From positions 248,001 to 312,000 of the forward strand of contig CBFFRO010000022.1 in assembly GCA_965644265.1 (NCBI GenBank): a stretch of 64,000 nucleotides of DNA, read 5' to 3'. Origin of the DNA: Glycera tridactyla. Lineage: Eukaryota. Shown here piece by piece: positions 14,766-54,137 of the stretch. Numbering within the stretch: the first letter of the stretch is position 1; each line of letters opens with the position of its first letter. Under the pieces are notes generated by a model. The model had not been told where the DNA came from. It saw only the letters and a list, made by a program, of their open reading frames with translations, and did no database searches. Made by a program: the position numbers and the translations under genes.

Positions 14766-14963
14766 AGTCCATATTTGACTGCTTCGATGCACAACGCCGC
14801 CCCTTTCAACCCTTATAGTGTGGGTCACGCGGCCTCGATGAACATGTCTGGAATGATCCAGCAGGTGGATACCGGTTCGACCGTTTCACCTAGTGCGCAG
14901 ATGTCCGTGATGGCTGGATCTGGTGTACAGGCAGCTAAAGTATCCCGTGCTGATCGACTCGAG
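14766..14963 (+). CDS. MBNL: Muscleblind-like exon: linker preceding the ZnF3/4-type pair (SPYLTASMHN...AAKVSRADRLE), phase 0/0
   Basis: Acceptor tgtgttacag| at 14765 and donor GAG|gtagtg at 14964; 198 nt with no stop. Ends RADRLE, like the RTDRLE that precedes ZnF3 in vertebrate MBNL, and joins in frame to VCREFQRG at 23392. Confidence 0.88.
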
Positions 14964-17900
14964 GTAGTGCCAAAACTCATGCCAAAACTCCCTCACAACC
15001 CTTATCACCAACAATGACCACTCCCCCCACCCCCTTTTCCTCCCTTCAATCGGACTATGTACTCTCGAATACCTTTCTGAAGGGTACACATCATGAATGT
15101 CCTTCTCTTACCACTCCAATTAATCACTCATGTATCAGCCAATCAAATAACTGATACAGTTTGTATCAGCCAATCAGGAGGTTGCATACATACACTAACC
15201 ACCATCCACCAATCATCTGATGTTACTTTAGTAGAGATTATATTATTTCCGAGAGCATTTTTATCTTTGTTTATGGTTTAGTTTAGTAATGTGGCATGGG
15301 GTGCAATGGTATTCTGCTTCTTATACATCACTCTTTGACAGTATCACAAAAAAAGCGAGAGCCTACGGTTATCGAATAAAATCACCAAATCCCATCGGCT
15401 GGCACTGCTGTTGAATCTTTTGAGGCTGATGGTTGAGGAAATTTCTATGACAGTATCATCATGTAGGTTTTGATGATTATATTTGGTAACCATTTGCTGT
15501 GAGGTTTCATACCGTCAGAGTTTGTACTCATGAGATGTTTGAATAGACTGTCCCATGAGTGCATATCTGATGTGTTTGGCTGTATCACATAGAGGATATG
15601 ATATCTGTAAGGTATCATACTTGATAGTTCATCTTGGGATTTCCTGAGGCCAGATGAGAGAGAAAATCATGCTTTATGATGCATATGACTGAATAAGGGC
15701 TTTGCTAGATCTAAGGAGAAATTTACTTCTCCATGTGTAGTCAAGACTTTGGGATTATCTAACCAATATTTCATGAGCTTTTTCATAGCATTTCACAGCA
15801 TATTTGTTGAAAATATAGCATTGTCAAAGGATAATGAAGGGATTTGAAATGCACAGAGTGTATGTCACTGTTTCTTTTGGCTCATCCAGTTATTTCTTGG
15901 CGGAAATTAAGATATGCTCCAACACAATCACATTTTACAGTGAAATCTTTCAGTTATCTAATGATCACTTTCACAGATTGTGGACATGAAAATATGTGAG
16001 AGTTGTGCTCATTCTCCAGGAGGCCTTTTTTTTTTAGGAACATAGAATTTTTTAAAATCTGATAGGAGAGTGCATGCTGTACTGCACTCAGCAAAGGATT
16101 TAGATGAAATATGGCTTTTTGAGAGAAGGGGGAACTAGCCAGTATGGTACAGTGATCCCACAGCTTTCATTCAGATGTGATTCTAACAGGCTTGATAGGG
16201 GGTACCATAAAGTTTTTGCCAATTAGCACGAATCCTATGGTCTGGTAGGAAATTCTGTGTAAAAGATGCACTGGTTGTGTGGGTGCCCTGTGTTATTTTG
16301 TGATTTATCCCAGAAGAATGACTGCTTGCAGTTCCAAAGGTCAGATTTCATTTCGTAGGTAATGACACTTTTCTGTGGATATTCTTTCATGATTCTATTA
16401 TTTTCATGTGCTATTATGTTTAGAGATTCCATATGTTTTAAATGTTTTGATCAGCCTCATTTGCCATGCATTGTTGAAGTCAGTGAGTGAAGAATGAAAT
16501 TTCATGTGCCTTACCCAACTGAATATGTTGATTAGATTTTTGTTTCACTATGTCCGGGCGTAATTATGCCACAGATGGTAACCGGATTAGGGGCATGGAT
16601 TATTATTTTCACATTTCATTATTCTCACGCATTCCATGGCTGGTTAGAATTTGGTTCAGAGATACAAAATTTAATCTGTGGCATTAAAGGTTTTTTTTCT
16701 CCTTCATGTGGGTTCTTCTCTAATACCATGAACATGATGAGTAGATATATTTTTTTTATGAGTGATCAAGATATCAAACTGTGGCAGTAATTTTTAATAA
16801 AATCTTGAAACGAAAATTCTCATCAATGTAGAACATCCAATCAGAGGACATTGCCAGAGAATTTTGTCCACTTGTCACCACCATGAAACTTTCATTTCCT
16901 AACAGGTGGAACAAAACATTTTTCAATCTTCTGACCACCCAAATTTATTGTAGAGCCTGTTGCAATTTAAGGGCAGTAATTGTGATTTTGTCAAATTGCT
17001 ATTTAGTACTTGGTGTAGGAAGATTGTAAGGTTCCATTTATCAGACTGGTCTATACAATTTTCTCATAACCAAGTAAGGTTTTTCTACTCAAATTGAGCA
17101 CATGAGATACTGTAATCATTCGGTCCTGTGTCAAGTATTCGGAACTGCAGCACAAACCTGATTCTTTGCTTTGTAGACCTGTGGCGTGTTCTGTGCTAGG
17201 TGGCAGCACAACTGATTTCTTTATATTATCAGTGTTGTTAACTTGTTTGTGATTGGTTGCACTTTCAGCCAATGAGATAGCTGCTGGGATATGAGTGCGA
17301 GCCTGCTCTATGTTGCCATGCTGACTGCTATTTGCTCTCTTTTTATCTCTGGCTCTCAATTCTATTTTATATTTTATCAATTTTTAGCTGTCACTGCTGC
17401 TGCTCTAGTACTTCTTTAGCTGATTCTGCTATCAAATTTGGATGATATTTATGAGCCTTCAATTCAGCTTGCCATCTTACTGCAGCTTCTCACTTTTACA
17501 CTTTTGCTTCTGCCACCTAAATTGTCCTTCCCAAATACCTGCTTATCCTGCTCCCAATTCCTTTACTTCCCTCCAAAGATTGAAGATCATAGAACTTGAT
17601 ATACCTGGAAATATGTTTCTTGTCCATATGGAGCCATCAACCAGTCTTGTGTTAGAAGTCAAGTGGTATCTTCCATACCCAATTTCTTTATATTAGTTGT
17701 TCATCGCATAGAATTACTTGTTAATGCTTTCCAACTGGCCAGTTCACAGGTAGCTGAATATGAATCTACATCCCATAATCCATGTCCACCCAGTTAATGA
17801 GATCTTTCTGTCCGTTGTCATGAATTCTGTTTTTAACCGGGGAAGTTGAAAATGATATGGATTTTTGATGAGGTGTAAAGGATGCCATCGGTGTATGCTA

Positions 17901-20900: not shown

Positions 20901-23280
20901 ACACAAAAGTCGAAGGTGAAGGTCATAGAAGCTATGTAATTTTCCACATTTTACAAAATGACTCAAGGTCATTGCAATCATGCATTCCATTCTTTAATGA
21001 GTCTTCACCATTGCAAAGAGAGCATAATTACATAGTCTATATAATTGATCTCAAAAGAAGAAATTACATGTGGTGGTCATAGCTTCTGGTAGTGATCGCA
21101 CTAAAATCACCATCATCCATTATTACTGCAGATTTGATTGTATTGATAAGGATTGATTGGCTATATGATTCATTTCAACCAGTCATCAACTATGATAAGT
21201 GGCCGACCCAACACTAGTCTCAAGGCCTTGCGACTATGATGTTGTGCAGCTTCCTTGTATCTTGAGGAAATTAACTCCACCATCAATGTCCACACCACTG
21301 AGAGTCAGTCCCTTGTTCAAATGGCTTCAGAATGATCATGATAAACTGAGGGCATGACACATTTAAGTAATCTGTATCTTACCTATTCGGTTAAGTTGTA
21401 CATATTCACATAATTCACTTTGTATTTGAATGTCATACCACGATCACAGAGAGATTTAGCTCTGTGTGCGCTGTATCTACACCGTCATATTATTGACTCA
21501 TTCAAGTGGTAACAATCATTGAATATGTGATCTATTTTCTTCAGTTTGATGATATTATAATCTGAAAGCCAATTGGTGAAAAAATACAAGATTGGTTCAT
21601 CATTATGCTTAAAAAAATAAAAAATTGTAGAATTTTGAAGGGAGCTGATGAAATTCACTGACTAAATTGACAGCTTGAATTGCGTTATAGGGGGTATTTC
21701 ACAGTATTTTCGTAGATCACCTTAGTCTCAGGATACATGTATTTGCAAGCAGGGCCACCCCATGTATCCTTGGTTTCACTGCTTTTCACAAATAAAGAAA
21801 AACAAAGCAACTGAAGGTAGCTCTAAAATTGAAGGCAGCGCATTTAAGGCAACCTTGAATATCAGCATCTTTGACATTGGTTAAGAGGTCACCAACTGCT
21901 CCAAATTCCTGCACAAGGACATAATATTGGTGTGTAATCCATAGTTAAGCCATCGTGAACATCCCTGATGTCTCACCTGTGTTTGTAATCATCAGTTGGC
22001 CCTGTTGAAGAGTTTCCTTGGTTTTTGGTGAGAAAAATTGATGGCTTTTCGGTAGCATCCATCGGAAAATCATGAAGCCTCAGTCCATGTACTCATGTTT
22101 ATCAGTCATGATTCATCACAATTAAATTCATTTGGTTCATGATACCCCTCTGACTGTGAAGTATGTGTTCAGGTAGACTTAGACCTAATTAATAGTTAAG
22201 ACATAGTCAGTATCTCTAGATCCCACTCTTCCTGACTCTCCTCTCCACTCTTGTTACACACTCAAATATTTTTCCCAGGTCTAATACATTTTTGAACTTT
22301 CAAGTTGGAAAATGAAGTTGAGCCCTGTTTGGAAAGTGTTGCAATTATAGCAAGTTTATTGGGTTTCCCAAAGGTTGAAAGGATGACTGCTTTGGAGATT
22401 ATTCCCGGATCAAAAATATTTTATTTTGAATAATTGTCATTCTATTCCTATTAAATAGGATTGATGTATGAAAGCATGGACTGGGACATCAACAAGTTCC
22501 CAATCAGGATCAATTTTATTCTGGTGAATTCTATTGATTTGTTGATACTAGGCAGGATTGTAGAGTCACTCTGTCAGGTATTAGTTCTGGATGTTATTAC
22601 TTTTCACTTAGATTTGTAAAGAACTGAAATATTGACAGGACCAATATTCTGAAGGCATGTTCATATCTACTGCATGGCTGATGAGTTAATTTGCTCCCCA
22701 AAATCTCTTGACTGAATGCAATTGCTCCTTGTTTGCCGCCATCTTGTGGCAGATTATATCATTCATCCAGTACTGTCCTCTAGTGTCAGCTTCTTGGCCA
22801 CTAGATGGCTCTTATTCTCTCACTGCTGCATCTCACATTGGCCATCTATTTCTGACATGGGAATCCACCATGACCGATCATTAGCAGTCTTCAAAATGTG
22901 CCCTACTGGGTTGTCCTCTTTTAACACTCCTGGTATTATTCTCCTGTGCTGCCCATGAGGAAGATATAGCTATCAAAAGATGCTAATGTCTTGTTTGGAT
23001 CAAGCATAGACTAGTCAGAATAGGGGGATATCACTTGTCATGACCTTTTCGAAGTGAGATCGTGTCGGAGAATTTAACAGTCCTCTTCTTGTAATTATAC
23101 TTCAAACACGAGTTAAGACCTTTTCACCCAATATCCCTGCTCCCTGTGGCATGCTTTGGGTACTAAACATGAAATTCCTAGCTTCTGTTTTCCTTTCTTG
23201 AATTCTGGACATATTGCCGTGGCAACTGAGAGAGGTTGTTATGGTGGTGATGTCGTGAATGTGTGTGCGTATTGTTTCAG

Positions 23281-23391
23281 CCCGCATCTTCAACGACAGC
23301 GAGTGTCTCGGAGGCGTCATCATGGTCCGGTGCCGGGTCTTACGCTGACTCTATCGCTCCCAGTTCACAATATTCCCAACTATATTTTCAG
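23281..23391 (+). CDS. MBNL: Candidate 111-nt in-frame alternative exon or 5' extension ([37 protein letters not shown])
   Basis: Acceptor attgtttcag| at 23280, 37 open codons in frame with ZnF3, 9 CpG in 111 nt against a CpG-poor background, ending at CAG|GTATGT. Confidence 0.45.
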
Positions 23392-23724
23392 GTATGTCGT
23401 GAATTTCAAAGAGGTACGTGTGCGCGTCAGCCAAGTGACTGTCGCTACGCACACCCCACTGATAATGTAACGGTTGATCTGACTGACAACTCGGTTACCG
23501 TGTGTATGGATCACGTTAAGGGGAAGTGCTCGCGGGATTCTTGCCGCTACTTTCACCCTCCTGCGCACCTTCAGGTGCAGATTAAAGCCGTTCAACAGCG
23601 GGCTAGTGTCTCGAACGCCGCCACCAACGCTGCTGCCGCCGCCGCCGCCGCTGCTGGTGGCCTCACCTGCCCTGCTACTACTACCGTGCTGCCACCTTCT
23701 GCTGCCCCGCCGCACTCCACCCTG
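23392..23724 (+). CDS. MBNL: Muscleblind-like exon with tandem CCCH fingers (ZnF3/4 type) and a 9-Ala tract, phase 0/0
   Basis: [21 protein letters not shown] (CX7CX6CX3H) and [30 protein letters not shown] (CX7CX4CX3H) match the MBNL signature. Acceptor tatattttcag| at 23391. Donor CTG|gtagga at 23725 is the best candidate; the 3' boundary is less certain than the 5'. Confidence 0.95.
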
Positions 23725-26700
23725 GTAGGAACTCGCTTCCTCTCTTAAATCACAACCCTGAGAGCGAATGCGGATCCAGTGTTGGTGCAACACTGGTCGG
23801 GTGTGAGGACGGGTGTTGCACCAGAACTGGGTGTGCATCACATGCTCTGAAGGGCCCAACTTATCCACTGGCTTCCTCTCATCTCTCTTTCTTCCTATCT
23901 CTCTCTCTCTTCTCACCACTCATCATCTTACACTCACCTCTCACACTACTCATTCCACCTCTCTGTTTCTCTCTCTTGCTCAGTTGCCATGGTAACATGA
24001 CAACATCTGTTCATCTTCTCTACCCTTAGCCTTATATATTTTTTCAAGTCCATCATTGCATTTTGGATACATGCTCCAACTTCTATCTGGGAGCAAATTC
24101 TTTCAATCAATTTGAGAAAAGTCAATTGATCAGCATATAAGGCCGGCAAAAATATTCTCAAATCTTTCCGGAAATATATTTTTGATGATTTTATCCTATT
24201 TTGACAGAGAGTACTTCACACCGAGAGAAGTTGATCTTAATATTTATTCATTCAGAGTTCCATTTTTCTGTCTCTGATTGCAGACATGCATGCAAATTAT
24301 TATAGTTATTATCACTGTTTTATCATTGGGAAAACCGCTGTCATATATTGACAAATTCAGTAATTGCTTTCCTCGGCAAAAGGGAAGCCGGCTAGAATGT
24401 TCTGACTTGGAAAATATATCTCAAAGCACAATCTTCACAAAACAGCTGATTCAATGTAGAATTGATATGGAAAGACATCTCCAGAACTGCACAGAATGTG
24501 AGGCAGCAACTTAATGATTTCAAATTGTGATGAAATGACACCATCAATCCAATCCAGAATGGGTTGGTGAATTGAGAGTCAATTGTAGTCATTCTACAAA
24601 TAATATGTGCTCAGACAACCCAAGATATTCCAATTTTGCGAACATCGAATATCTACCAAAAGTTGGCAGTGCCTTCTTTCGTCCCAGTTGAATTCACGGG
24701 ATGGTCAGACTGTTACTGCAAGATATCTGAGCTTGAGATTGATGAGGAATAGCAGTTCGAATTCATACATGATTTTCATAATAAATCTAGGCCAAGGATT
24801 TCTGGCATTCAGCAATCAGTGCAAAGAATTACCAACAAAAAATCTGAGTAAAACGTCATGCTGAACTACTGTATTCCAGTTTTTCACTAGCTGTTAAAAG
24901 ACACCAAATCCTCTCTATTTAGACCAGCCAACTTCATGGAGGCATGTCCTTCTAGCTCCTTCTCTGACTTGCTACAAAAAACCTACCAACTTTACTCGCT
25001 TACTTACCCGCCCAGAGCCTGCTCTCTCCCTGTCTCTCTCAGTGCCTGGCTTCTCTGTATGAATGCCGCCAAATGACAGTCTTTGAACAGCCAATGAGAT
25101 GCGAGCACACTGTAGATACACTTCCTTTCATGTGCTTGACCAAACCTGCTTCAGCTTACAAAACTTTTTTCCCTCCTGCAGCTAAAGCTATTGCTGCTCT
25201 AGCCGGCTTCGCTTGGCCACATCTATTGTGCTTCAGATGACTAATTCAGTGCCTCTTTAACCCGTCGCCACATGTGTCCACATTCGTCCACGGGTTGCTT
25301 TTGCGATGTAGCCTTTTGCGTACCTTCCAATGTGGCATCGTTTTCACTTTGATCCACTTTGTTCAGTGGATGAAGGTGACGGCTCTGTTTCTGAGGTTGG
25401 TGGGCAAGAGTGGTGCCTATACACTGGCAGGTGGTGGACCAATATGGACCAATGAGGACCAAAAATATGGATGAAAATTCCCGCAAGCACGTCACTGCTG
25501 CTGAGAAATCCAATCTTCACCCTCACTAAGGTTGGGGTAGATCATTTCAGATCCATCATTGGTAGTATACATATTCTACTACTGGATTTGCCGTTTCTCA
25601 AATATTTGACATTGTGACTCAAGGCAAATACATTTAGGAAAAATGAATATCTGGAAATCATTTGTGTCTTAAACATCATATGTGATGATCCATGAATGAA
25701 CCATTGCCAATTAATTTGTTTTTTCAACTTAAAGATGGGATATTTTTTGATGAATCATTTCAGCATGCAAAGATTTTTTTCATGCATCACTGCCATTTTT
25801 GAGTTGTGAATTTCAGTAAATCTTTTCCTTTTGTTTTTTGATGAATAAAAACATTGATGGTTTTTCTACCATAGATGTGGGGAGATTCCCAAATCATATA
25901 AAAACTGTGGCATTTCTAAATTGGGATTGCTTTTTGAAGTTAACCTAGCGAGCATCTAACTTTGATGAGTGGACAAAGCAGAGGGGGGCATTGATTTTTG
26001 CTACAAAAATACAGAATGACCTACCTGATAAAAACCCTCAAACATAAGTGTGCGTGTGTGTGTGTGTGTATGCATGCGTGCATGTGTGACAAAAGATCAT
26101 GTGAATTTGTGTTGGGCATGTTTGTGAAGGACGAACTGACGGAAGGACAGATGACAGACATTGCCCCTATGCACACACATACACACACATTGGTTGTGTT
26201 CAGGTGTGATATTTCAATTGTTAATAACTGAAATGAGATCCCGGACATGTGTGAGAAAATAAGAATTCTCCGGCTCCAATCATCCAGTCCATCAGCTGCC
26301 CCCTGCTTCCACCATCACTGCTTGCGCCCTCACAGTGCAGTAGCATTTAAACTTGCTTTGCTACCCCCTGCTTCATCCCCTCATCACAATGCGCCACCTG
26401 ACCAAAACTCACTCTTCCGGCTTTGCTCGTATTCGAACTGACAACTAAAGTGCGCCAACACAAGCAGGTGACAAGAGATACAATTTTGGCCAAAAGATGA
26501 ATTGCGAGAAAAATGCCACATGTTTTGTCATATCCTGAATCTCATTCATCAAAGAGGGAAAGACTGAGGGGTGGTAAAATATTCATCACTTTGAGTTCAC
26601 TCAGAAGCATTTTTTCTCGTATTTGATTTTTTTCTGAGAGTGAAAAGATGAATGTTCTCATTTATGCTATGTTATGTTGTTTGTTATTTTTAGAACACAA

Positions 26701-33000: not shown

Positions 33001-34742
33001 TCACATTCCCCCCACTGGTTGGTTCTGTCGAGTCATGTGACTAGAAGGCCTGCCAGATTGGCTCAGCTAGATCACATGATGATGAGACTAGTCTGTGACT
33101 GGTTGTAGTCCGTTCAGGTTCAGGTGCAGGCACCCATTCTTTAGAACATATTATGACAACATTTGCAGGTGGTTAGTGGGCACAACTGGCCGCTGGGAAA
33201 GTAAAAAGGCCCCACGTCAAGCTTTTATTTTGTGTGTAACACTGCCTTTTCTCCGACAACTTGCTGATATGATCTTCTCTTTTACCACATGCAGATGGTC
33301 ACTCAACTAAAGAGGCTACATTCTTGTGGTTCACAAACACAATACGTTGTTGGTTCTGACCTGTGACCATGGCAACATGTTCATGGATGCTGAGGATACC
33401 GATTGGTGCCAAGTAATTTGACAGGCTCCTTTCATTCCAGTGCCCAAAAAGGAAACCCCATCATCATCAGCACCCAATTTGGAAGTCTTTACTCTGTCAG
33501 TTTTTATCGCAGCCATCCCGCACTTGGCATTTCACTGCTGCTTTCTTTCAGAACAACTGGGTCTCATCTCCCTTTTCTTAAAGAAATTGAAATGTCCCAA
33601 TGCTAGAGCCAACAGCTTTGGATGGTTTGACCCTTTCTGTACCGATGAAACTAGCAGTATTCATTGTATCATAATTATAGGTATGTGGCATGTCCAGTCT
33701 GCATATCAAGGTTCTACAGTGAACTCAGATACAGATACAACTCTTAAGATGGTTGTATTATCTGTCGTGGAAGCCGAATATATCCGGCCATATTGTATCA
33801 TATGGCAATTGTAAATAGACTTCTGATGAATGCTGTTATTTATTTATTTCCATGGAAATCTTGTTTGTGTCCCAATGGGATGTCCATGATGAAAAAGTCA
33901 GTAAGCAGATATTGACATTTCCATTATACAAAGTATATATAAATCATTGCATCATATTATTTCCAAGATGTATTGGTACAGAAAGGGTTGAGGTTTTTTT
34001 TGCTAGTTCTAGCTCTATATGCATCATCCAGTTCTTCACGTCTAATCAACAGAGCATCGTCACCAGCTTGTTTTGTTTTGTAGACATCACACCATCCCCA
34101 AAACACCATTCATCCAATCTGACAATAAAACAGTACTTTCTCAAACAGAATGGCAAGCAAATTCATGAGCCACCACCACCGATGATTCTCATGTATCCGA
34201 TTATTATACACTGTCTTGAATATTGTGAGGCTTATTTTCAGTCGTGGGCTTGCCTTTCACAGAGCTCTGACCTATTTATGAAATTTTTATTGTGTTGGCG
34301 TGCGCTCTGTTTTTTGCACCAATCCGCGTGCCGCTACTATTCTGTGTTCCACATGGTCGTGGCTTTCGGTAGAGGTTGTAGCTAGGGGGTCACGGGATCA
34401 TTACGCCTATGTTGCATGAGTGTGCATACAGGGGTCGCTAGTGTATTTTATAAACACCAGATGTTGCTGCTAACCACCTGTTTAGTGTCATGTCTCATCC
34501 ACGTCTGCAACGTTTCTATAGTGCGCAATTCTTCACATCTCTGAGTTGTAATGTCTCTATTCCTCACGTGATACATATTAATACGTTTTTCAGTGGCCTC
34601 TACCTAATTTATGTTAATTAAAACCTTATAATCTATATGGAGTCACCTATGATGAAAGGCATGCACCAAGACTGAAAAAGAGCTTCCTCATTTTTTCTCT
34701 CAAACTATTGGATTGCATGATGTTAAACTGTTTTACCAACAG

Positions 34743-34931: not shown

Positions 34932-37215
34932 GTACTATGACCCATCATGCTTTGCATGTAGCCAGTAGTCTGCTTAGGATGATGTTTTGCACAGTCACAT
35001 GACAAAACCATGACTACCTATCGCTTCCTTGGTAATTTGTGTAGGCACGACTCTTGGTACTGGATTTCCCCACTCCCCAAACACTACGGTTTTTTTTTAG
35101 CGCGTCCGCTACATTGAAGGAGCCTTGGACCAGTCAGTACATGCACCTTGCTGTGGGTCTTGAGGGATCATGAATAATGAAAGGGAAATAAAGAACTGCG
35201 AGCTACTAAATTGGTTCTACAATGAGAAAATATCTGTGCTTTAATTCCTACCATATGTCTACTCTTTGACTCATGCACTCTTTTATCTGTTCTTGAATAT
35301 CTTGTAACTTTGAACAGACATTCTTTTCGTAATGTCTTATCCAGATTTTGCTTTCCAAACTTCATGACAGAAGCCTATAAGCGTGGTATAGGTGTGCAGG
35401 ACCGAGTATAAAGCAGTGCATGAGTTTCTCTTTGGACATTTATGGTAGAAATAAAGTGATACCTTTCCACCTTTATGTTTTAAGAAATCAGCAATTTGAT
35501 CAAGTTTGTGATAGACTTTAGAGCAATTCAATCTCCAGATTAGTATGTAGGAGCTTTCATTCAGGAAGATCAAATCAGAAATCTTTCACAAGTCTCACTT
35601 TCTCATAGAAATAATATGACATGAGAAATCTGGGAGAAAGTTTTTTCATATGGAATGTAGTCGAAATTCACTTCACACTGTATTTCTTGTGAACATTCAT
35701 GTAATCAGGAACATCGCAATAAATGATGATATATAATGAAGTCACTATTTTAAAACAGCACAATATGGATATTTTAACTATGCATTTGTCATTCATCTCA
35801 CTTCTACATATCACTATGCTGTAGAAGTGTTGGCAATCGAGAATCAAAATTTTTTCAATCTATTGGATTTTTTCCAATATCGAGCATCTTTCCAAGATGT
35901 TGGCTCCTGTCCATAGGTTACTAGGTATTTGGACAGGTATAAATACATGTATGTGTGACACAATTTAGAAATGGCATAGATTCTTTTATAGTAAGCATGG
36001 GGACAATTGCGTTCTCGTGATGATCTATCTGAGGGTGTTGGTTGAGATCTGCTTACAGTGAGGTGCATGTATACAGTGTCCTGCGCTCATCGTTTACACT
36101 GCTTGCATGTCAGGCACACTTTGGAGATCTTGATCATTTCACCTCTTCTCCTGTGTGCGGGCTAAGAGGTTTGGGCGCACTTTAATTTGACCATTCCTGA
36201 TTCCCATATTTCCTTATATAAAATGCTATTGATAGCCCTAGATAATAATACATAGACATGCAACACAGTTTATGGTGTTGGTTTTAAACTTGCACACCTG
36301 TTAATTAAAGATAGCCTTTCATCATTCGTTCTGGACTCTCTCATTCCTCAGATGCTCTCTTTCTGTCATGAATTGTGTGTCTAAATTGTACACTTTTGGT
36401 ATTGCTTTATATTCGACTAACGTGAAGAAGAATGCTGGAAAAGCTGCCAATGTCTTTCTTTCATCAGGCCACTAACGAGCATGCTTATATCTGTTACCAT
36501 CTTATTAGGAAGCAAGTTTCGGACATATTCTGTTCATTTATTGGCTGTAGAATGTTATCTGCACTGGGACAAAAATTGGCAAATTATTGAGGAAGAGCTT
36601 CTGTGACAATCCTCAATGCAGTTACTGGAGTTGATGTTGATCCATGGTTGAGCCTCTCCTCATAGGCTTGACCATGATTCATCTGCCAATTTTAACAACT
36701 GCAGGTCATTATCTAAACACGATGGAATTCCAGGGGTGGGATCAGCTTTCCGTATGTAGCCCTCAGTTCAGAGCAAAAGTTCCAGGAGGAAAATATTACT
36801 TGCCTAGAAATTTCAGGAAGAAAAACACAAAAAAGGTCTGACACTTGTCATGTGATTCTGCAAACTGAAGTAAACAAATATATGAAATTAGTTTATTTGA
36901 TATTTAAGTTAATGTGAAGCACATGTTGTAACTGTAGTCATCACCGGCAATGAGTTAGTATATACATGCATTGAGAGATAACAACTGTCTCTGTTTATTT
37001 CTTTGCTCAATTTTTCGGTATTTGATTACCAATTATATTTAATGCCGGGTTCAGATGGAGATGTAACCTGTAAATTGTCTTGTCTCCATCTCTTGAAACT
37101 GTAAATGAGCTTCACATATCAATCACAGCTGAGCCATGTGTGCGGTGAAATCAAACAAGCAATCAGAAGACAGGGACTTGTTGTATTTTAGGTTATTGTT
37201 GGTTATTCTTATTTG

Positions 37216-37759: not shown

Positions 37760-40700
37760 ATTGTGGTGATATCAATAGTAACATGAACAACAATATAAGC
37801 AGCAAATATAACATTGGCAATAATCATATTACAGTTGATAGTGTAACTAGAAATTGATTCCCAAGAAATGGCTTTTACTCAAATTGTGATAGTAGATAGG
37901 TTGTTTTGCTGTGTAGCATTTCCACTTGGTACTGCTACTGCATATTGCATTGAAGCACAGCTGTATAACAAAAAAGATACAACTGGTCAATCCATAACTT
38001 GGAATTCTCATTAAATAAGCATTTGGGTATATACTGGTGGCATGCATCAGGGTTGGCAGTCTTCACTATTTTGTTATATACTTCAGACTCACTATATGTA
38101 AGTCACATTTAGGTTGCAGTGATCTGATATTATATTGTAAGTCATGTCACAAAAATGGATGATCAATTTTAAATAATAGGACACAATTCATCACTCTTAA
38201 TAATGCTCGAAGTGAATATTGCAGCACGAACAATCTTATACAAATTAGTGCTTTCTCGTGATTCTTCTTGTTCATCTCAGGTATCAGATAGAGACAATTT
38301 TGCATAAATTTTGTGATAAGTATTTATGCAGATTTGGGTTGAGGGAATGGGAGGGAGGTGAATGAGTCTTTGAAAATGGTCAGAATGAGCAAGTGTTTCA
38401 CACACTTAGGATCACTAAGCAATCACATGCAGATGTCCAAAAGCCATGCATGAATTACCAAACACTTGTCAGATACACGTCAGCTTTCAGATCAGATCAA
38501 CGTGTCGCAGTTCAGCGTAGATTCGATATAGAGAGGCAGATCTCCCAGCTACTTGGTGTTATTTTCTGATGTCATTGCTATTTGATCTTGTGCTGTCTTC
38601 AGTGTTATCATTTCACCGAATTCTGTTAGGCGTCCAATGCTCAGATTCTTCATCAGAGTGTCACCTATCTGCAACTGCGATGTCATGCAGCTGTTAAGAA
38701 AAATTCATTGGAATTTTCCAGAATTGTTCAAAATGCATTGGTTTTTATGAATTGCACAGTCTATGTTTTCTATGTTCCAATTCATCTCAATGATGAAAGT
38801 AAAAAGTCAACTTAAGTAGACTGTCTCATAAAATTTCAACTGGTGCTCAACATATTGTTAGCAACTGCCATATTATTCTGCTTTGTGCTCTACTGAAAGC
38901 TCAGAATACAGAATAATGTTGTTAGTTTCCCCAAGACGCTGGATGCACAACATGTATGGCATTTGTGAGACTCATACGTTTCTCAAAACAGTGACTACCA
39001 TCTTTGTTGCCCGTTATATGCAACATCTGATGGTTGCATGCTCTATGCAATGTGGGTATTACAACCTCATCTTTCAGCAAATGAACATCAGACTAGAATT
39101 CAACAGATAGGTGTACATTATTGGTGAATTGGTGACAAGCGTGAGGTTGAGGTGCTCAAGATTACTTGAGTTAGCTAATTTATTTGCTTGTTTATCTTTC
39201 ATGAGCTGCATCCCGTCTGGTTCCATTCCAGTTTCAGTATCTGGCTTCACACATTGTCCTTATGCCACACTTATGCCTGTCCAGAAGGCTAAATTTAGCA
39301 GGCACAGGATGTTGGTTTTTGATATTGCTTGGCATGGTCATATGACTACGTCTCTGCCCGAACCTCAATTTATTTGCCTGCCTGCTGTGCAGAGTTGAAG
39401 CATGTATTACAAGGCCTATATCAAGTCAAAGACTGAAGTGTGGCATAACTACAAGATGTCCTATGCATGTGATATGGGTGAGAATGGATGGCACTTTTGG
39501 AGTATGCTATCCCATGGAATGTTGTAGTGGCAAAAGTCTGTCTTATGTGTTTTTCTCATTCATATCCTGTGCGTAGGGCATTATTGTCATGAACTCACCA
39601 GCGTATTGTCAATCATTTCTCACCACCACTGCTCTTCATGCTCCGCTTGGCTTCTGTATCGGCAGGAAGTAAAATTTGCAGCTCAGTGGTTTCAACATGG
39701 TGGCACACACTAGCTTTCTGATTTTTAGTTTTTCTTGACCCTCTCTCCTGCTCCCCCTCTTTTGCCATTGCAAAATCTCAACAGATGATACCCCAGCATG
39801 AACGTGATTTGCCACCACTCGGTGGTGATATCATCAGCTATGAACCCATCTTGTGGTGACCTGTCAAAGCTAGATGCCTCACTTTTATTCTTTTCGAATT
39901 CACCTGGAGGTCAAACACTAATTGGTATGGCTGGACTGCTCTAATCACCTGTGTGCTACTCCGTATTCTTGGTGTCCGTGTGTCTTTATTGAGCTGATGA
40001 TGGCTGAGGCTTGTTTTCTGTTCATATTCGTTGATAACTAATTCAATGTTAATGTTGAAACAGGCACACCGTCCTTACCCAATGCCGGGTGTACCACTCT
40101 ATGTGCCAGGGCCAGGTCAGTAAGCGTATTACCGTAGGAATGGCATTCTTGCAACGGCTTTTAATGTTGCTTTTACTCCGTAAGCAGTTGTGACTCGCTT
40201 GACATGATTATTGTGGCAAAACACTCGCTGCTGCAGGCATATCTTGTTAGTGCCACTTGCTTTTCACTCAATCATTCAGCGGTCCCGATTTGTATATCCG
40301 GTATGGGCTTTGGAACCTGATTGCTAAAAACTCTTGTTTGTGTCAGTGGGGGAGTTTAATTACAGGGCATGGAGAAGTCTCTGAATTGGCTTAGCATCCA
40401 AGATTGAAAATGCATTGACCATAATTGAGCTGTAGATAAGTTCTTTTTTCATCTTAGTCCCTTTTACACTAAACTTGTGTTGATTTCATTAAAATGCTTA
40501 ATTATCTATTTAACAATATATTTATCGACAAAAGTGTCATAAATATAAAATAAACCATGTGTCTTGATGTGGCATGCTGATTGTCCGTTGTATCCGGCAT
40601 ATTTACTATACAGCCCTGTCTGCTAGCCCCCCTCTTCCAGTATTAACCTATAACATGTTAATCTCCTCAGAAGCACATCAAAAAAGCACTTGTGGTGATA

Positions 40701-42599: not shown

Positions 42600-42759
42600 G
42601 GTATGTCAGTACCGGGTATGGTACCTATGGTGAAGCGTGCAGCGGTTGCCGATAACAAGAGTGGAATTCCTATGTATCAGCCCGGCGCTGGTGCCGCGGC
42701 CTACCAACAAGCAGCTCTTGCTGCTATGCATATGCAACAACCATTTGTGCCCGTAACCA
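42600..42759 (+). CDS. MBNL: Muscleblind-like exon-6-like segment (GMSVPGMVPMVKRAAVADNKSGIPMYQPG...QQPFVPVT), phase 0/1
   Basis: Acceptor gcattgcag| at 42599 and donor CCA|gtgagt at 42760. The KR..A...G.P.YQ....YQQ...QQPFVPV pattern is typical of Muscleblind C-terminal regions. Confidence 0.9.
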
Positions 42760-46962: not shown

Positions 46963-47130
46963 NNNNNNNNNNNNNNNNNNNNNNNNNNNNNNNNNNNNNN
47001 NNNNNNNNNNNNNNNNNNNNNNNNNNNNNNNNNNNNNNNNNNNNNNNNNNNNNNNNNNNNNNNNNNNNNNNNNNNNNNNNNNNNNNNNNNNNNNNNTGGG
47101 CGTATGGATGTGTATGTGTGTGGGTGGGGG

Positions 47131-47180
<50 letters not shown>

Positions 47181-47740
47181 TACATGCGTGCATGTGGCGG
47201 ACTTTATATAGGATTGATCCTATTTCCCATTTCCTGGGTGCATGTGCACTTGCAAGTGCATGCATGCATACCTACTCAACTCTGAATGTGTTATTTCAGC
47301 ACATTTATGCACACCGAATGGGAATTGNNNNNNNNNNNNNNNNNNNNNNNNNNNNNNNNNNNNNNNNNNNNNNNNNNNNNNNNNNNNNNNNNNNNNNNNN
47401 NNNNNNNNNNNNNNNNNNNNNNNNNNNNNNNNNNNNNNNNNNNNNNNNNNNNNNNNNNNNNNNNNNNNNNNNNNNNNNNNNCGGGTGTGTGTGTATGTGT
47501 TCACGGGTGTGTATGTGTTCGCGCAATTGACAAGGNNNNNNNNNNNNNNNNNNNNNNNNNNNNNNNNNNNNNNNNNNNNNNNNNNNNNNNNNNNNNNNNN
47601 NNNNNNNNNNNNNNNNNNNNNNNNNNNNNNNNNNNNNNNNNNNNNNNNNNNNNNNNNNNNNNNNNNNNNNNNNNNNNNNNNNNNNNNNNNNNNNNNNNNN
47701 NNNNNNNNNNNNNNNNNNNNNNNNNNNNNNNNNNNNNNNN
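46963..47740. other. Three assembly gaps (46963-47096, 47328-47481, 47536-47740)
   Basis: N characters. Confidence 1.
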
Positions 47741-47762
47741 AAAAGGTGCAAATATGTGCACT

Positions 47763-47800
<38 letters not shown>

Positions 47801-47830: not shown

Positions 47831-47881
47831 CGGCATGTATGTGTGTGTCACATCCAGTAGTCTCTTCATTATCACTCACAG

Positions 47882-48099
47882 CATTTGTTCTCTCTGACTT
47901 CTCTTTCATGCCCTGCCCCATCACTACTCCAACCACAACCTGTTGTTGCTTACCAAAAAACAAAAAACAAAAATCTGCTCACCACACACTGCATGCTGCG
48001 CTACCAACTCACACACGCTTTCCACCAATCGCTGATCTCCTCTCAACCTGCCTTCACCGAACCGACCAATCGCTGGCCGTGTCTCAACCATGCCATCAG
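47882..48099 (+). promoter_or_regulatory. 216-nt AG-exclusion zone with YGCY motifs upstream of the 98-nt exon
   Basis: No AG between 47882 and 48097; 11 YGCY motifs; branch-like CTGAC (47894) and CTGAT (48032) each followed by pyrimidines. Confidence 0.6.
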
Positions 48100-48197
48100 T
48101 GTCATTGCTACCGGGCACACAAGCAGCGCTAGCAACCGGAAGTATGGCGATGGTTACTAACGCCGCTAGCGTCAATTATTTTGACGAATCAAACCAG
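48100..48197 (+). CDS. MBNL: 98-nt exon (M)SLLPGTQAALATGSMAMVTNAASVNYFDESNQ, phase 1/0; needed to put the extra zinc-finger pair in frame
   Basis: First AG after a 216-nt AG-free stretch (catcag| at 48099); donor CAG|gttagc at 48198. Phase 1 matches the 42759 donor (a+tg=ATG) and phase 0 matches the 52495 acceptor. Confidence 0.78.
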
Positions 48198-51100
48198 GTT
48201 AGCTAAGATACCGCAAAGTCATGGCACGGTGCAGGCTTGCTGCCATTGGTGGTTGCTGCTTGCTGATATTATAAGCCGGATATTGTCCTAGCTGCACCCG
48301 CAGCATTTGGGGGTCCTCTATTGGGGCCCTCCATTGGCAGCTGGCTTTGAGTCCTCCCTCACCTTTGTCTAGCCCCTCCTCCTCCTCTCCCTCTCTCACC
48401 CCTCTCTCTGGCTCTATGGCACTTCCCTGTTCACTGATATAGAAATAGTTGCAGAATAGTCTTTAGAGGAGGCATACAATAGTTGTGCTTAGCCGAAAAT
48501 TCACTCTGTATCAATTTGGAGGTCGTAAGTACTTTTTTTGTTTCTCCCAAGTCAAATTGATCCTGCTGCTGAGTTTCATCTATTCTGACATCAAAATCGG
48601 CATAGATACGTTTGCCTTGGATGATGTACATTATCTTCAAACTACTGAGGATTTTCACCATTTAGAGCACAATCATTTCATATATGCCATCCATCAGGAT
48701 TTTGAAGACATGATTTCTCTTATAGGCATAAATTGCCACATTTCAAGCCTGATATTGCAAAAACTAGTATCAATGATTCTGAAAATTGGCATCATAACAA
48801 TCCTTGCTAATCAAGTTTTAGCATCCCTGCTACTTGCATTCACATACGTGCAAAACTTTGGGAGAAATAGTGCTCATCTCCTGATGATTTGGAGAAAGAT
48901 GACGATCGCAATCGTCTATGACTCTTCCAGAGTAATCCAGTTATCACTAATGGATTGTTGATGATAGATGTGTGGGACAATGTAGTGAGATGTTCTCTAT
49001 GACTCCAATGAGACATTAATCAACCAACAAAACAAGACAGACCCCTTAATCATTGTATACAATTAGTTCATATGAGTTTTGGTATTCCATTTGATTCATG
49101 TGGGTGAAAGCTGTAGAAACTCCAAGGTATATGATGATTTATTCTGACTGGTGATATCCTGAACCCAGGGCATTTAATACAATGATGCATAGGTAAATTT
49201 GTAGCGTCCTGTTGCACAATCCCACTCCTGTGTTTCATCAAGAATCAGAACCAGGCCATTTTCATTTGGTGTATTTGTTTTATTTTATCTCTTTCCATCA
49301 TGCGAATGATTCCAGTTGCCAAACCATTCATAGCCCAAACAATCGAAACTGCAATGTCAGTGCAAATATGTCGATTGAGCAAGCATTTTCTTTCTTGCTT
49401 ATTTGTTTTGTTCTGTTTATTCTGATGATGCCCTGGCCAATTGGTGTGTACATGCTTTGTTGTCTCTTCATGCTTATTCCATATCATGCCTCTCAAATAA
49501 TTCAAGCCAGGGTTGAACAGATGTAAAAAGCAATCATTTACTCAAACCTTATCTTGATCTCACCCCGCTGTGGAAGAGTGTTACCAGGGGTTGAGATATC
49601 TCTCATTGTGGAATATCTGGCACACATACAGGCATACATACATACTCAGGCATTGATACCAGTCTAAAAGAGACAGATGAACAATATCAAACATTTATGT
49701 GAAAATATTGTACATTTATCAAATGATGCCTTCAAGATGCAACATTCCATGCAACAAGACTGGAATGAAAACAGGTTTGGCGCTGATTTCTCCGTCCAGT
49801 TCATAGTTTGTGCACCAGGGAATCTTCAAATTCATTACGAATTTGGAGTAATGACTTCTTTCCTTGGCTGAGATTTTGACAGCTCACACATCACAATAAT
49901 CAAGGAAATTTAGATTTTTTAATGTGCTCATTGGTATTACTCCATCAATATAAAGAGGTCAATTTTGCCACTCTTTTCATGAAAATGATAAGCTGTGTAC
50001 ATGTGCAATCCATGGGATGATCACTTGTAGCAGTGGAAGAAGGGATTTGCGATGTAGGGACCTGGATTTGCTGTAGATGTTGGTGAAACAGAATCCCATA
50101 TTCAACCAACTCTTTGATCATTGCAAATACATTGACAATGACAATGACAATATCTTTTATTTTATAATAATACATTGTACTGCCATCAGTACTCAGTTCA
50201 TTACTGATTTTGGAAATCGAGGGTGGCATCTCTGAGTTTATTTTGTATTTTATTGGTATTATTTGAGTTCATTGATCATCAGCTTATGTTGGTAACCTCC
50301 TGCCGCCCCAAACTCTTCATCACCAGTCTCTTCTCATTGAATGTCTCACACATCTCTCAAACTTCAAATCCATAAAGTGTGAACCATGGTTTGATCTTGT
50401 GGGAGACCACAAGTATTCAATATCAGTTCGATGTGACTTTATTTATTCTGAAGCCTCCATGTGACTGTCCCATAACAGGTATGATTGTGTTACCTATCAA
50501 TAGGTTTGAGTTATCTTTGTATTTCAATAGAAATAGTATTTGTATGAGCGATGTAAAGATCGAGAACAGATTATGAAGATCATTGCCCAATAAGATTCAG
50601 GAATAATTTGCCTCCTCATAGACTATTCTCCACCACAATCACATTGCCTCCTGTGCCATAATTGCTCCCTATAGTTCAGCATTCCTCCTATGCAGTTAAC
50701 TACCACAGTTAAAAATCCATTATCAACGAAGAATTTACTGAAATGCTTCATCATAGATTCAAATACACCTTTCAAAGATAGATTTTCATGCTGTTTTTGG
50801 AAAGATAGCAGTTTTTTCTCATCAGATATAGAAGTTGACTGTTTCAACAGCTTATATATAAATGAACATCAGAGCTTTCCCACTTTGGTTGGTCCATTGT
50901 TGATGATTGGGACTGTGTGTATTTTCTGCATGGAGTGTTATTGGTAGTGCTCTCTACTGGCACACGCCGCCGCCGCCATCACTGCAGCAGCAAGCCTCCA
51001 CTGGTGTCCCTGTCGCCATGCCGATGGGAATTTCTTCTCTTCTCTTTTTGCCGTGACCTCATTCTCTGCAGGCTTTGCAGTGGTGTATTTCTTGCAGGGA

Positions 51101-52494
51101 ATGAAGTGACTCCACTACTGAGCACCTCACAACCCTTGGTTGGAGTCCTCTCTGTGTGTGATCCACCCAATGGTGTTGGGATGCTTGCTTCATTTTCAGG
51201 TTCCTGTTTGAACAATGCAAATCTTTTAGTTCAATATCATCCCTTGGTCATCGAAACACACCCATGTATGTACAATCTGATAAAGATAACATCTATAAAT
51301 TTGGGCATTTCTTATTGGCGCCAATAATAGAATTATTTGTTTGGAGTAAACACCAAACAATTGTCCCAAAGTGTCCATTCACATTGAAATTGAGTGTAGT
51401 TTGGAGATTCTTCTCAGTTAGCATTACATAGCAGTGCCTTCTATGTGAAGTGTGCAGATCATGTATCAGATTTGTGTGCTGGTGCTATCAAGAAGCACTT
51501 CCCAGTCTTTTCAAAAGTGTAAAATTAATACCCATGAGCTGGTAACTAGAACGGCTCAGTCAGAATTGCTTTTGGTGAATTACTAGTTGATATTGGGGAA
51601 AATGGAATTTTGCGTATGCATAGATCTGATTTTATCATAATTCACATAAGTTGTGGAGGGCATCATCCTTTTATGAGGGTATTTTAGGTGCTCTGCCTGA
51701 GAGGCTGTGAAACTTTGCTGGAAGTATTTTGAATTCTGGATGAATTTGTAAAAGATTTGCATTGGAGCACGGGTTCCTGAAGTATGTTCTGTGAAATAAC
51801 TACTTTGCCTGATGAAAACTCTGCTTCATAGTTAACATGATTGTCCATAGATTTAAAAACAGACTGAACTCACAAGTTTCCATTTCTCTGCTAGAATCAT
51901 TTCACAGTTTTCTTCTTAGTGAAATAAAATCTGAATTTTGTGCCATACCAAGATGATGGACTTGAGAGACAAATGATCTCCATCTGAATTCATCTTCCTG
52001 GCAACATTTCTGAAATCATACTTTTCAGCATATTATAACCAAAAAGAATATGATTTTTCAGCATGTACATGTAGAATCCAAAACATGAGGTCAAAGGATC
52101 TCATAATGATAATTGTTTCCAGTTTCATAGAACACACTGGTTTACATTCAGCAATATTGCATTCATGTAAGCCATACAGGAAAACTGATACTGAACATCA
52201 TTCAAGAAGTTCTTTTAGTCGGGGAAATTGAAAATTTGATCATGAGTAGTTGGTTGATCTTTCCTAGATGTGCTTTGAAGTATTTCCTAGCAATAACAAA
52301 GTAATTTCTATATACAACTGGAGCTTTTATGCATTAAACTTTCAACACTTGTTCAACTCTGCTCAGATCTGCTTTGCTAGCTGTGTTTTCAATGAATGAG
52401 TGACTAGAGGGTATGTCTTGCTGATGATGTTTCCTTGTGATCGCTCTCCATCTACCGATTCTCCAAACTGATGAAATGTGAATTGTTCTTACAG

Positions 52495-52579
52495 TTGCTG
52501 GACACCCTCCCAGTGTGCAGAGATTTTAAGTCTGGACAGTGCAAGCGGCCACAATGCAAATATGTTCACCTTGTAGAAG
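52495..52579 (+). CDS. MBNL: Exon encoding an additional CCCH finger (LLDTLPVCRDFKSGQCKRPQCKYVHLVE), phase 0/1; absent from the ORF track
   Basis: Acceptor ttgttcttacag| at 52494 and strong donor AAG|gtgagt at 52580; CX7CX4CX3H preceded by the MBNL-type (L)xVC motif. Confidence 0.9.
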
Positions 52580-52734
52580 GTGAGTAAACATGAGATACTT
52601 GTGTATAATCGTGCATACATGCATACAGTAGATATGATTTGTTGTTATTACATCATCTCAATACTCATTGATGTTTTTTTCTCACTCATCAAATCATATT
52701 CATCGATTGTGATTCAGAATTATATCCACATGCA

Positions 52735-52739
52735 CACCC

Positions 52740-52803
<64 letters not shown>
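52735..52803. repeat. (CA)n microsatellite
   Basis: Directly visible. Confidence 0.95.
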
Positions 52804-52804
<1 letters not shown>

Positions 52805-52989
52805 TTTTTTTAGTGATAGAAATCATGTCAGAGACATATTTCCAGATTGTACTGGCAACAGGTCCATGAAATGTGTTCCAAATGCCCAAATTATTTTTTG
52901 GCTTGTATGGGATTTGAACCATCAACCTTCCAGTTTGGCACCCTCGCCAGCAACAAACTGCCAACGCTCTTGTCCTCTGCCCCACGGCA

Positions 52990-53853
52990 NNNNNNNNNNN
53001 NNNNNNNNNNNNNNNNNNNNNNNNNNNNNNNNNNNNNNNNNNNNNNNNNNNNNNNNNNNNNNNNNNNNNNNNNNNNNNNNNNNNNNNNNNNNNNNNNNNN
53101 NNNNNNNNNNNNNNNNNNNNNNNNNNNNNNNNNNNNNNNNNNNNNNNNNNNNNNNNNNNNNNNNNNNNNNNNNNNNNNNNNNNNNNNNNNNNNNNNNNNN
53201 NNNNNNNNNNNNNNNNNNNNNNNNNNNNNNNNNNNNNNNNNNNNNNNNNNNNNNNNNNNNNNNNNNNNNNNNNNNNNNNNNNNNNNNNNNNNNNNNNNNN
53301 NNNNNNNNNNNNNNNNNNNNNNNNNNNNNNNNNNNNNNNNNNNNNNNNNNNNNNNNNNNNNNNNNNNNNNNNNNNNNNNNNNNNNNNNNNNNNNNNNNNN
53401 NNNNNNNNNNNNNNNNNNNNNNNNNNNNNNNNNNNNNNNNNNNNNNNNNNNNNNNNNNNNNNNNNNNNNNNNNNNNNNNNNNNNNNNNNNNNNNNNNNNN
53501 NNNNNNNNNNNNNNNNNNNNNNNNNNNNNNNNNNNNNNNNNNNNNNNNNNNNNNNNNNNNNNNNNNNNNNNNNNNNNNNNNNNNNNNNNNNNNNNNNNNN
53601 NNNNNNNNNNNNNNNNNNNNNNNNNNNNNNNNNNNNNNNNNNNNNNNNNNNNNNNNNNNNNNNNNNNNNNNNNNNNNNNNNNNNNNNNNNNNNNNNNNNN
53701 NNNNNNNNNNNNNNNNNNNNNNNNNNNNNNNNNNNNNNNNNNNNNNNNNNNNNNNNNNNNNNNNNNNNNNNNNNNNNNNNNNNNNNNNNNNNNNNNNNNN
53801 NNNNNNNNNNNNNNNNNNNNNNNNNNNNNNNNNNNNNNNNNNNNNNNNNNNNN
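52990..53853. other. Assembly gap in the intron between the two fingers of the extra pair
   Basis: N characters. Confidence 1.
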
Positions 53854-54018
53854 GGTTTCATACAGGGTTTGAACCCACAACCACAGCCAGCAACACACTG
53901 CCAGCTCTCGTGACTGCTACACAACCAAGTGCCCCTTCCCCACAAACACATCTGGAATTTACTAGGTGTATCAGTGATGAACAGTGCTTCTATTATTGGA
54001 TGTTTTATCTCATTTCAG

Positions 54019-54137
54019 ATTATGTAGAAGTTTTGGACGGCAAAGTAACAGTATGCCGAGATGCGGCAAAAGGGAAATGCTCTCGTGCCATGTGCAAGTA
54101 TTATCATATACCAATACTGCCGCATCTACTTATCTAG
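54019..54137 (+). CDS. MBNL: Terminal coding exon with the second finger of the extra pair ((D)YVEVLDGKVTVCRDAAKGKCSRAMCKYYHIPILPHLLI*)
   Basis: Acceptor ttttatctcatttcag| at 54018; g+at=GAT joins the phase-1 donor at 52579. CX7CX4CX3H preceded by VTVC as in MBNL even-numbered fingers; TAG at 54135-54137. Confidence 0.9.

Follow-up and report, generated by a model that had tools for sequence, protein, structure and literature searches.

MBNL proteins have a central role in both myotonic dystrophy and developmental splicing. We describe a 64,000-nucleotide (nt) stretch of DNA (the window; G000:C36:248001-312000, in a 2.04-Gb assembly) that contains the central and 3' portions of a lophotrochozoan-like invertebrate's only muscleblind (mbl/MBNL) orthologue. 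The gene retains an ancestral bilaterian layout, with three tandem pairs of CCCH zinc fingers (ZnF) and several splice switches. Taken as a whole, we read it as a three-pair muscleblind gene in which one cassette exon (c) switches a nuclear localization signal (NLS), another (e) switches the reading frame, and the Mbl protein feeds back on its own transcript, and we put the probability of this reading at about 0.65. An initial annotation of the window had proposed a self-regulated splicing system with three alternative exons, each behind an AG-free zone and each changing a functional module of the protein. That proposal is partly confirmed, in that the module logic stands for exons c and e and is unsupported for the third exon, at 23984.

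The exon chain was assembled on the plus strand from a CCCH motif scan and a six-frame reading of the window, and the whole chain (exons a to g; Table 1) is in frame and supported by homology. Exons a to g are collinear with muscleblind-like proteins of Pecten, Centruroides, Nephila, Nymphon, and Saccoglossus. The nearest named relatives by the ZnF3/4 exon (exon b) are gastropods and bivalves (69-77% identity); at the nucleotide level, this exon is 74.5% identical to that of Pecten, and it is absent from the Argopecten X9-X12 and Centruroides X5 RefSeq isoforms. The fingers are paired and have the C-x7-C-x4-6-C-x3-H spacing and the linker of about 14-15 residues that mark the muscleblind family, with Pfam zf-CCCH_10 scores of 92 bits (exon b), 29 bits (exon f), and 43 bits (exon g). 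About 150 kb upstream, the same contig carries exon 1 (MAMVNQ...), which encodes ZnF1 and half of ZnF2. A search of protein clusters for the locus returned generic muscleblind clusters only. The initial annotation's naming of a muscleblind locus is thus borne out by the CCCH pairs, the Pfam scores, and the collinear orthologues.

The third finger pair (ZnF5/6) is encoded by exons f and g, which as a pair resemble the ZnF1/2 unit divided by an intron. A word search with ZnF6 matched the muscleblind-like C termini of Nephila, Centruroides, Pecten, Argopecten, Nymphon, and Saccoglossus at 70-81% identity, and in these relatives' proteins, ZnF5/6 is always C-terminal and follows an exon-e-like segment. 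When the ZnF5/6 unit of the scorpion Centruroides orthologue (P0002:355-431), rather than the residues of the window, was used as the phmmer query, it aligned end to end with the solved MBNL1 ZnF1/2 and ZnF3/4 domains (Protein Data Bank chains 5u6l, 3d2q, and 3d2n; E values, 7e-13 to 8e-12; at least 60 residues), the sole difference being x4 instead of x6 spacing in the first finger. The presence of ZnF6 in protostomes and a hemichordate, together with the alignment to the MBNL1 domains, argues for a genuine third MBNL-type pair that predates the protostome/deuterostome split. In the window, no premature stop interrupts the ZnF frame across f and g, and eight of eight zinc ligands are intact. 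The aromatic and arginine positions of ZnF5/6 look conserved relative to the 3D2S complex, and binding of YGCY/GC-step RNA is putative. The extra pair that vertebrate MBNL was said to lack is therefore real and conserved among relatives. A 2026 review gives one finger pair for invertebrates and two for vertebrates (PMC13044900), and Drosophila mbl isoforms have been described with one or two tandem zinc fingers, at most two pairs (Irion 2012, PMC3315501). As in Drosophila, splicing sets the number of pairs, ZnF3/4 sits on a single cassette-like exon, and intron positions are conserved; the "second" pair of the Drosophila RF transcript, reported as poorly conserved (Irion 2012, PMC3315501), may be the counterpart of ZnF5/6. 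A full-text literature search found no paper on a six-finger or three-pair muscleblind. In the Saccoglossus locus (L010), the ZnF6 exon is present as a tandem duplicate (17426-17526 and 17654-17750), and the RefSeq model joins parts of both copies, which looks like either a prediction error or mutually exclusive exons.

Access to the third pair is gated by exon e. The end of exon d is in phase 1, and the 98 nt of exon e are 2 mod 3; by frame analysis, f and g are read as ZnF5/6 when e is included, and skipping of e shifts the reading of f by one frame, with the protein terminating in ...VPVT-IAGHPPSVQRF and a stop. The orthologous exon e is also 2 mod 3 in Pecten (116 nt) and Saccoglossus (68 nt), and the exon in the window retains both this frame-restoring length and the conserved ..NYFD..NQ end. 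Predicted proteins of Mizuhopecten, Centruroides vittatus, Octopus, and Bradybaena terminate in the tail AGHPPS(L/V)(P/Q)RF; overall, the short tail was found in at least five protostome taxa and the ZnF frame in at least seven taxa. The products of both frames are therefore conserved along with the 2 mod 3 lengths, and the e-f junction was not seen in the four RNA runs described below. The stop of the short frame lies exactly 50 nt before the last exon junction, as it does in Pecten. DNA identity to spider is 82% for exon f compared with 66% for the ZnF3/4 exon, which is what a dual-coding exon would show. The initial annotation had the exon choices change, among other things, the reading frame and the number of CCCH pairs, and both changes are upheld for exon e. 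Open reading frames from two spiders (transcript and genome derived) represent e-skipped mRNAs read in the finger frame. UniRef entry A0A4Q8K339 (P0157, Liphistius, "U64-Liphistoxin") is the open reading frame of an e-skipped muscleblind mRNA, composed of exon d out of frame followed by ZnF5/6, and its name looks misannotated.

The same arrangement can be seen in RefSeq, where predicted six-finger isoforms of Pecten maximus (X1-X6) and Centruroides sculpturatus (X1-X3) have equal module order, equal e-f-g junction phases, and the alternative tail; these are automatic predictions for which the literature search found no description, and scallops have an additional exon between d and e, unlike the window. 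MBNL feedback in vertebrates acts on exons e1, e3, e5, e7, and e8, one of which is frame shifting (PMC13044900). Vertebrate e8 resembles exon e in being 2 mod 3 and in changing the C-terminal frame on inclusion, the MBNL feedback being that of the vertebrate exon (PMC13044900). The two frames of e8 lead to two short tails, whereas here and in other invertebrates one frame is a whole extra tandem zinc finger. Chelicerate exon e peptides align with the vertebrate VPMMHGA...ANQ exon with z scores of 3.7-6.6, and exon e of the window does so weakly (z score, about 1).

RNA contigs from four runs of two studies were placed on positions 48090-54089 only. Each of the four runs had contigs, 5.9-14 kb long, that joined 52579 to 54019 (GT..AG). 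This f-g joint identifies the runs as RNA, the assembly gap at 52990-53853 as intronic, and both sides of the gap as one transcript, in frame. In X1, X7, and X8, a loose contig end before 52495 was identical to the final 30 nt of exon d, giving a d-f junction and hence transcripts in which exon e is skipped; the same junction spans the three assembly gaps at 46963-47740 in intron d-e. Another loose end, before 52492 (X1, X2, and X7), matched 40083-40112 exactly and uniquely, which defines a new exon, h, flanked by ACAG and GTCAGT and entering f in the short-tail frame. Because exons h and d have the same phase, they may be mutually exclusive; the loci of Pecten, Saccoglossus, and Caerostris yielded no counterpart of h. 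In the RNA sampled, the predominant form is the four-finger one with the short tail. Junction-level RNA, which the initial annotation had proposed as a check, thus confirmed skipping of e (d-f, three runs) and yielded exon h; e spliced in was not seen in it. Word searches for the organism's own e-f-g protein returned none, which is no evidence of absence, given length limits and contigs that break at junctions.

Exon c encodes GKKRPRD and exon d MVKRAA, an arrangement matched in the proteins of relatives, and the orthologous exon c peptides (PQVVEVIPGKKRPRD..) are variably included among Argopecten and Centruroides RefSeq isoforms. Compared with the 96-kb Pecten locus, the window matches best at the DNA level over 34700-35004, comprising exon c and both intron flanks (80% over 316 nt, blastn), so that the exon c element outranks the ZnF3/4 coding exon (74.5%) in conservation with Pecten. 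The purely intronic 34748-34856 matched Saccoglossus at 76% over 120 nt (E = 2e-10), and the element matched the spider Caerostris at 66% over 221 nt (E = 2e-12). As aligned, the intron element is conserved across Lophotrochozoa, Ecdysozoa, and Deuterostomia. Its core, UGCUUGCUG at 34778-34786 of the window, consists of two YGCY motifs and is invariant in five of the five loci aligned; the aligned elements also have in common a distal T-rich tract, the blocks CCAUGCUGCC and CAUUGGCC, and ACUAAU(U)A(A)G at the exon c acceptor. A conserved UGCAUG lies ~145 nt upstream of exon c and another ~25 nt downstream, the latter kept in Pecten and Caerostris and nearly kept in the Naja MBNL3 locus. The layout (a 115-nt AG-free zone, 10 YGCY per 100 nt, a weak UAG acceptor, and a predicted branch point) is alike in four other loci. 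The initial annotation had placed this exon behind an AG-free zone, had called two of its three zones YGCY-dense, and had listed the NLS among the modules changed; the zone (115 nt), its 10 YGCY, and the KKRPR coding content agree with this, as do RefSeq isoforms of relatives with and without c. An in-frame alternative acceptor for exon c is possible at 34875 (57-nt exon); it was replaced by 34860, as all orthologues begin PQ/H-x-VE.

This layout closely follows that of mammalian MBNL1 exon 5, which has a branch point at -141, a 90-nt YGCY region, a weak AAG acceptor, and an ultraconserved flank; the exon is repressed by MBNL1, and deleting the 90-nt YGCY region abolishes that repression (PMC7901844). 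Both are small cassettes carrying the first KR/NLS motif, with the second KR in the next exon (Gates et al. 2011; PMC7901844), and both have a pyrimidine tract adjoining a distal branch region, a YGCY cluster of ~90 nt, and conserved flanking introns. The long AG-free interval is 115 nt here (branch point at -141 in mouse), and the weak acceptor is UAG here compared with AAG there. They differ in length (72 nt here versus 54 nt) and show no significant nucleotide alignment, and Mbl dependence here is putative. The cobra MBNL3 locus and the window have the UGCUUGCUG core and the CUAAUUA(A)G acceptor motif in common. In Caenorhabditis elegans, mbl-1 exon 7 is a KR exon repressed by MBL-1 and coregulated by FOX-1 via intronic GCAUG (PMC10773944); it is likewise an invertebrate KR-motif exon, although it encodes 75 amino acids and belongs to a protein with a single finger pair. 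Alternative KR exons have been reported throughout the bilaterian phyla, Ambulacraria excepted (Verbeeren et al. 2023, PMC10773944). Saccoglossus (L010, ~10324-10390) has a KKRARD exon with the conserved upstream element despite that exception, and the exon after it has KK rather than KR.

AG-free zones of unusual length precede three positions in the window: 216 nt before exon e (the longest non-N AG-free stretch in the 64 kb; 99.97th percentile), 115 nt before exon c (99.7th percentile), and 129 nt before 23984, compared with 18-32 nt before exons a, b, d, and g. The zone before e measures 179 nt in Pecten and 176 nt in Saccoglossus; that before c measures 168 nt in Pecten, 109 nt in Caerostris, ~189 nt in Saccoglossus, and 249 nt in cobra MBNL3. 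Within its own locus, each of the e and c zones compared ranks at the 99th percentile or higher. The conserved length of the e zone and its distal pyrimidine tract argue for a distal branch point and regulated use. The second copy of the locus in the assembly (C34; see below) is uninformative on constraint around the e zone, as the whole 819 nt is ~100% identical, flanks included. The last 100 nt before c contain 10 YGCY (99.8th percentile), and the corresponding counts per 100 nt are 11 in Pecten, 9 in Caerostris, 7 in Saccoglossus, and 7 in cobra MBNL3. Before e there are 5 in the last 100 nt and 11 in the 216-nt zone. An unbiased scan of the window gave 19 YGCY per 120 nt at the poly-Ala end of exon b, 11 in the c element (second highest), and 8 in the e cluster. 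Of the earlier claims on this point, the AG-free zones therefore hold for all three positions, and YGCY density is strong before c and modest before e. The densest cluster, at 23605-23727 in the GCU/GCC repeats of the poly-Ala end of exon b, lies in 120 AG-free nt and is a possible candidate Mbl site inside the ZnF3/4 exon. The third proposed exon, an 8-nt microexon at 23984, is unsupported and was rejected for now: no homologous insertion occurs in the proteins of relatives, the region is not conserved in Pecten, its CT-rich tract contains one YGCY, and its divergence is neutral-like (5 differences per 140 nt between C34 and C36, in contrast to zero in the adjoining 800-nt block).

We propose the following mechanism. 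Exon c, behind its distal branch region, pyrimidine tract, YGCY cluster of ~90 nt, and weak UAG acceptor, would form the first switch: nuclear Mbl would bind the YGCY cluster and block that acceptor, so that high Mbl would yield the form without the NLS exon, as for vertebrate MBNL1 exon 5 and C. elegans mbl-1 exon 7. The second switch would be exon e, the inclusion of which would give a six-finger protein. With e skipped, or with h in place of d and e, exon f is read one frame off, the protein ends after 11 codons (AGHPPSVQRF), and the ZnF5/6 sequence becomes 3' untranslated region (UTR). By weaker inference, Mbl may also act on the AG-free zone before e. Conservation of the c element, the layout in common with MBNL1 exon 5, and the C. 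elegans KR exon make autoregulation of exon c well founded and not new in kind, and we consider it quite probable that Mbl regulates this exon. That Mbl is also the regulator of exon e is a guess, one to be held tentatively. It is doubtful, if conceivable, that the scheme extends to the bilaterian ancestor as a whole, with a three-pair Mbl, an exon e toggling, by way of a dual-coding exon, between a six-finger form and a four-finger form with the AGHPPSxxRF tail, and Mbl setting both this choice and that of the NLS via YGCY-bearing AG-free zones, vertebrates having since lost the pair and kept the frame-switch exon and the feedback.

Several observations weigh against the autoregulated three-pair gene. 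Mbl binding and a dosage effect in this organism are putative, and the alternative use of c is carried over from the isoforms of relatives. Shuffles that preserve dinucleotides gave P values of 0.08 (c) and 0.05 (e) for the YGCY counts, which indicates that most of the excess reflects local GC and pyrimidine (dinucleotide) content; the e cluster is not unique, tying with three other places in the window scan, and the sequence of the e zone does not align with Pecten or Saccoglossus. No significant alignment backs homology of the c element to the vertebrate one, the grounds for which are the 9-nt core, the acceptor motif, and the layout: the cobra MBNL3 locus gave no significant blastn match to it, and a fish MBNL3-like locus had no recognizable exon 5. 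The conserved UGCAUG and ACUAAU within the c element suggest that other factors may control exon c. The zones might then be ordinary distal-branch-point architecture read by Rbfox, SF1/Quaking-type STAR proteins, or PTB, with the exons alternative and the loop not autoregulatory. FOX-1 does coregulate the C. elegans exon (PMC10773944), far-distal branch points are common before regulated cassette exons generally (PMC7901844), and the YGCY counts are near the shuffle expectation; nevertheless, the UGCUUGCUG core with its two YGCY is invariant in all five loci, and the orthologous exon is Mbl dependent in mammals and nematodes, and we regard control by such factors without a feedback loop as unlikely.

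The RNA also weighs against a spliced exon e. Coverage of exon e came from just two runs, both of the same study, at a depth of 3.5-4, equal to that of scattered intronic contigs; both contigs over it read through the 48100 acceptor, and its spliced inclusion at 48100 was not seen in the four libraries. One of these contigs (X8 contig 22; 318 nt, depth 4) covers 48090-48197 and ~209 nt further upstream, unspliced at 48100. Its length fits 47882-48197 plus one letter at each end, as if the 216-nt zone were part of a longer, 316-nt exon with its acceptor at 47880-47881, preceded by a decent pyrimidine tract and CAG (47860-47881) and with its frame open at 47884-48129; read from d, such an exon would hit a TAG at 48130-48132 and give a third tail or a "poison" form subject to nonsense-mediated decay. 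The fit, however, is one of length, the part of the X8 contig read being 48090-48197, the depth is that of the intronic contigs of those runs, the X7 contig extends further upstream, past 47881, and the ZnF frame requires the acceptor at 48100 by homology, which together make the longer exon improbable. Should exon e be out of use altogether, f and g would be a short-tail terminal coding exon and 3' UTR, ZnF5/6 would be a relic, and the six-finger protein would never be made. No e-f junction was found in the four libraries, and the f partners that were observed (d and h) all use the short-tail frame. Those libraries may, however, not represent all tissues and stages, and a relic would be hard to reconcile with a ZnF frame that is open through f and g with all eight zinc ligands intact and 70-81% identity to spider and hemichordate proteins, or with an exon e that keeps its frame-restoring length and ..NYFD..NQ end; we consider it very unlikely. 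A further gene downstream, a tandem muscleblind duplicate to which f and g would belong, might be suggested by the likeness of these exons to an intron-split ZnF1/2 unit, but relatives carry the pair at the C terminus of one protein, both exons have acceptors and no start codon context, and a gene starting at f is refuted by the d-f and h-f RNA junctions, which leaves this alternative next to no probability.

If Mbl does set both the NLS and the exon e choice, one Mbl level would tune both its own localization and its RNA-binding valency. A conserved third pair gated by a 98-nt exon would change the picture of the ancestral protein and would provide a natural experiment on finger number versus target choice. 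The c element is a rare noncoding element common to protostomes and deuterostomes and offers a compact test sequence for autoregulation. The NLS switch and the multiexon MBNL feedback in vertebrates, including the NLS exon and a frame-shifting exon, are already established and published; what goes beyond them is the third pair, its frame-switch gating via a dual-coding exon, and the protostome-deuterostome conservation of the intron element. A literature search found no paper describing the third pair, the gating, or the conservation of the element, though all are visible in public predicted proteins and genomes.

TABLE 1 Coordinates of the muscleblind exons and associated elements in the window
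Feature	Position (nt)	Strand	Description
Exon a	14766-14963	+	Linker ending ...RADRLE, phase 0-0; splice sites and frame; homologous to the ...DRLE linker of scallop, scorpion, and acorn worm
Exon b	23392-23724	+	ZnF3/4 tandem CCCH pair and poly-Ala tail, 333 nt, phase 0-0; zf-CCCH_10 E = 1.5e-26
Proposed exon 23984-23991 and CT-rich AG-free tract	23852-23991	+	8 nt; rejected
Intron element before exon c	34726-34859	+	Pyrimidine tract, YGCY cluster with invariant UGCUUGCUG core, ACUAAUUAG at acceptor
Exon c	34860-34931	+	72-nt cassette PQMVEVMTAAGKKRPRDPGDDFIL, first KR/NLS motif
Intron stretch after exon c	34932-35004	+	CUUUGCAUGUA (UGCAUG, Rbfox-type motif); inside the 80% Pecten blastn block
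Exon h (new)	40064-40115	+	52 nt, AHRPYPMPGVPLYVPGP; joined directly to exon f
Exon d	42600-42759	+	160 nt, second KR motif (PMVKRAAV), ends in phase 1; frame and homology
AG-free zone before exon e	47882-48099	+	Distal pyrimidine tract, then 11 YGCY; may be exonic in a long form, 47882-48197
Exon e	48100-48197	+	98-nt frame-switch exon (MSLLPGTQ...VNYFDESNQ)
Exon f	52495-52579	+	Dual-frame; frame 0, ZnF5 (LLDTLPVCRDFKSGQCKRPQCKYVH); frame +1, (I/V)AGHPPSVQRF, stop TAA at 52527-52529
Exon g	54019-54137	+	ZnF6 (CRDAAKGKCSRAMCKYYH); long-isoform stop at 54135-54137; Pfam E = 4e-11
3' UTR	54138-64000	+	Extends past the window end

The whole locus is present twice in the assembly, on C36 and on C34 (~54.777-54.978 Mb, minus strand), with equal exon spacing. 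Identity between the two copies is a mosaic (~100% around e, 99% around c, 96% around b, and 91-93% around exon 1), and the second copy probably comes from an uncollapsed haplotype and not from a paralogue. Over 800 nt around exon b (23092-23891), the copies have zero differences, and the flanks of this block differ by 5-8%. The 111 nt before the exon b acceptor (23281-23391) form an open in-frame extension (PASSTTAS...YFQ), which is also open and similar in gene calls from related organisms that read through the same junction (P0036). The junction itself reads CAG/GTATGT and could thus act as acceptor or donor.

Repeat copies with a tRNA-like B-box (GGTTTGAACC) lie on both sides of the assembly gap in intron f-g (52690-52989 and 53854-53900), and RNA contig depth over them is 2,000-3,000 compared with ~100 for the gene. 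ARAGORN found no tRNA in this repeat, which is a short interspersed nuclear element (SINE)-like element and probably the cause of the gap. Downstream, a long 3' UTR is indicated by eight small contig sets from two studies, in which 86-88% of 54019-58018 is present. Of the words of the same interval, 15% occur in two runs of another organism (B), a hint of conserved blocks within the 3' UTR.

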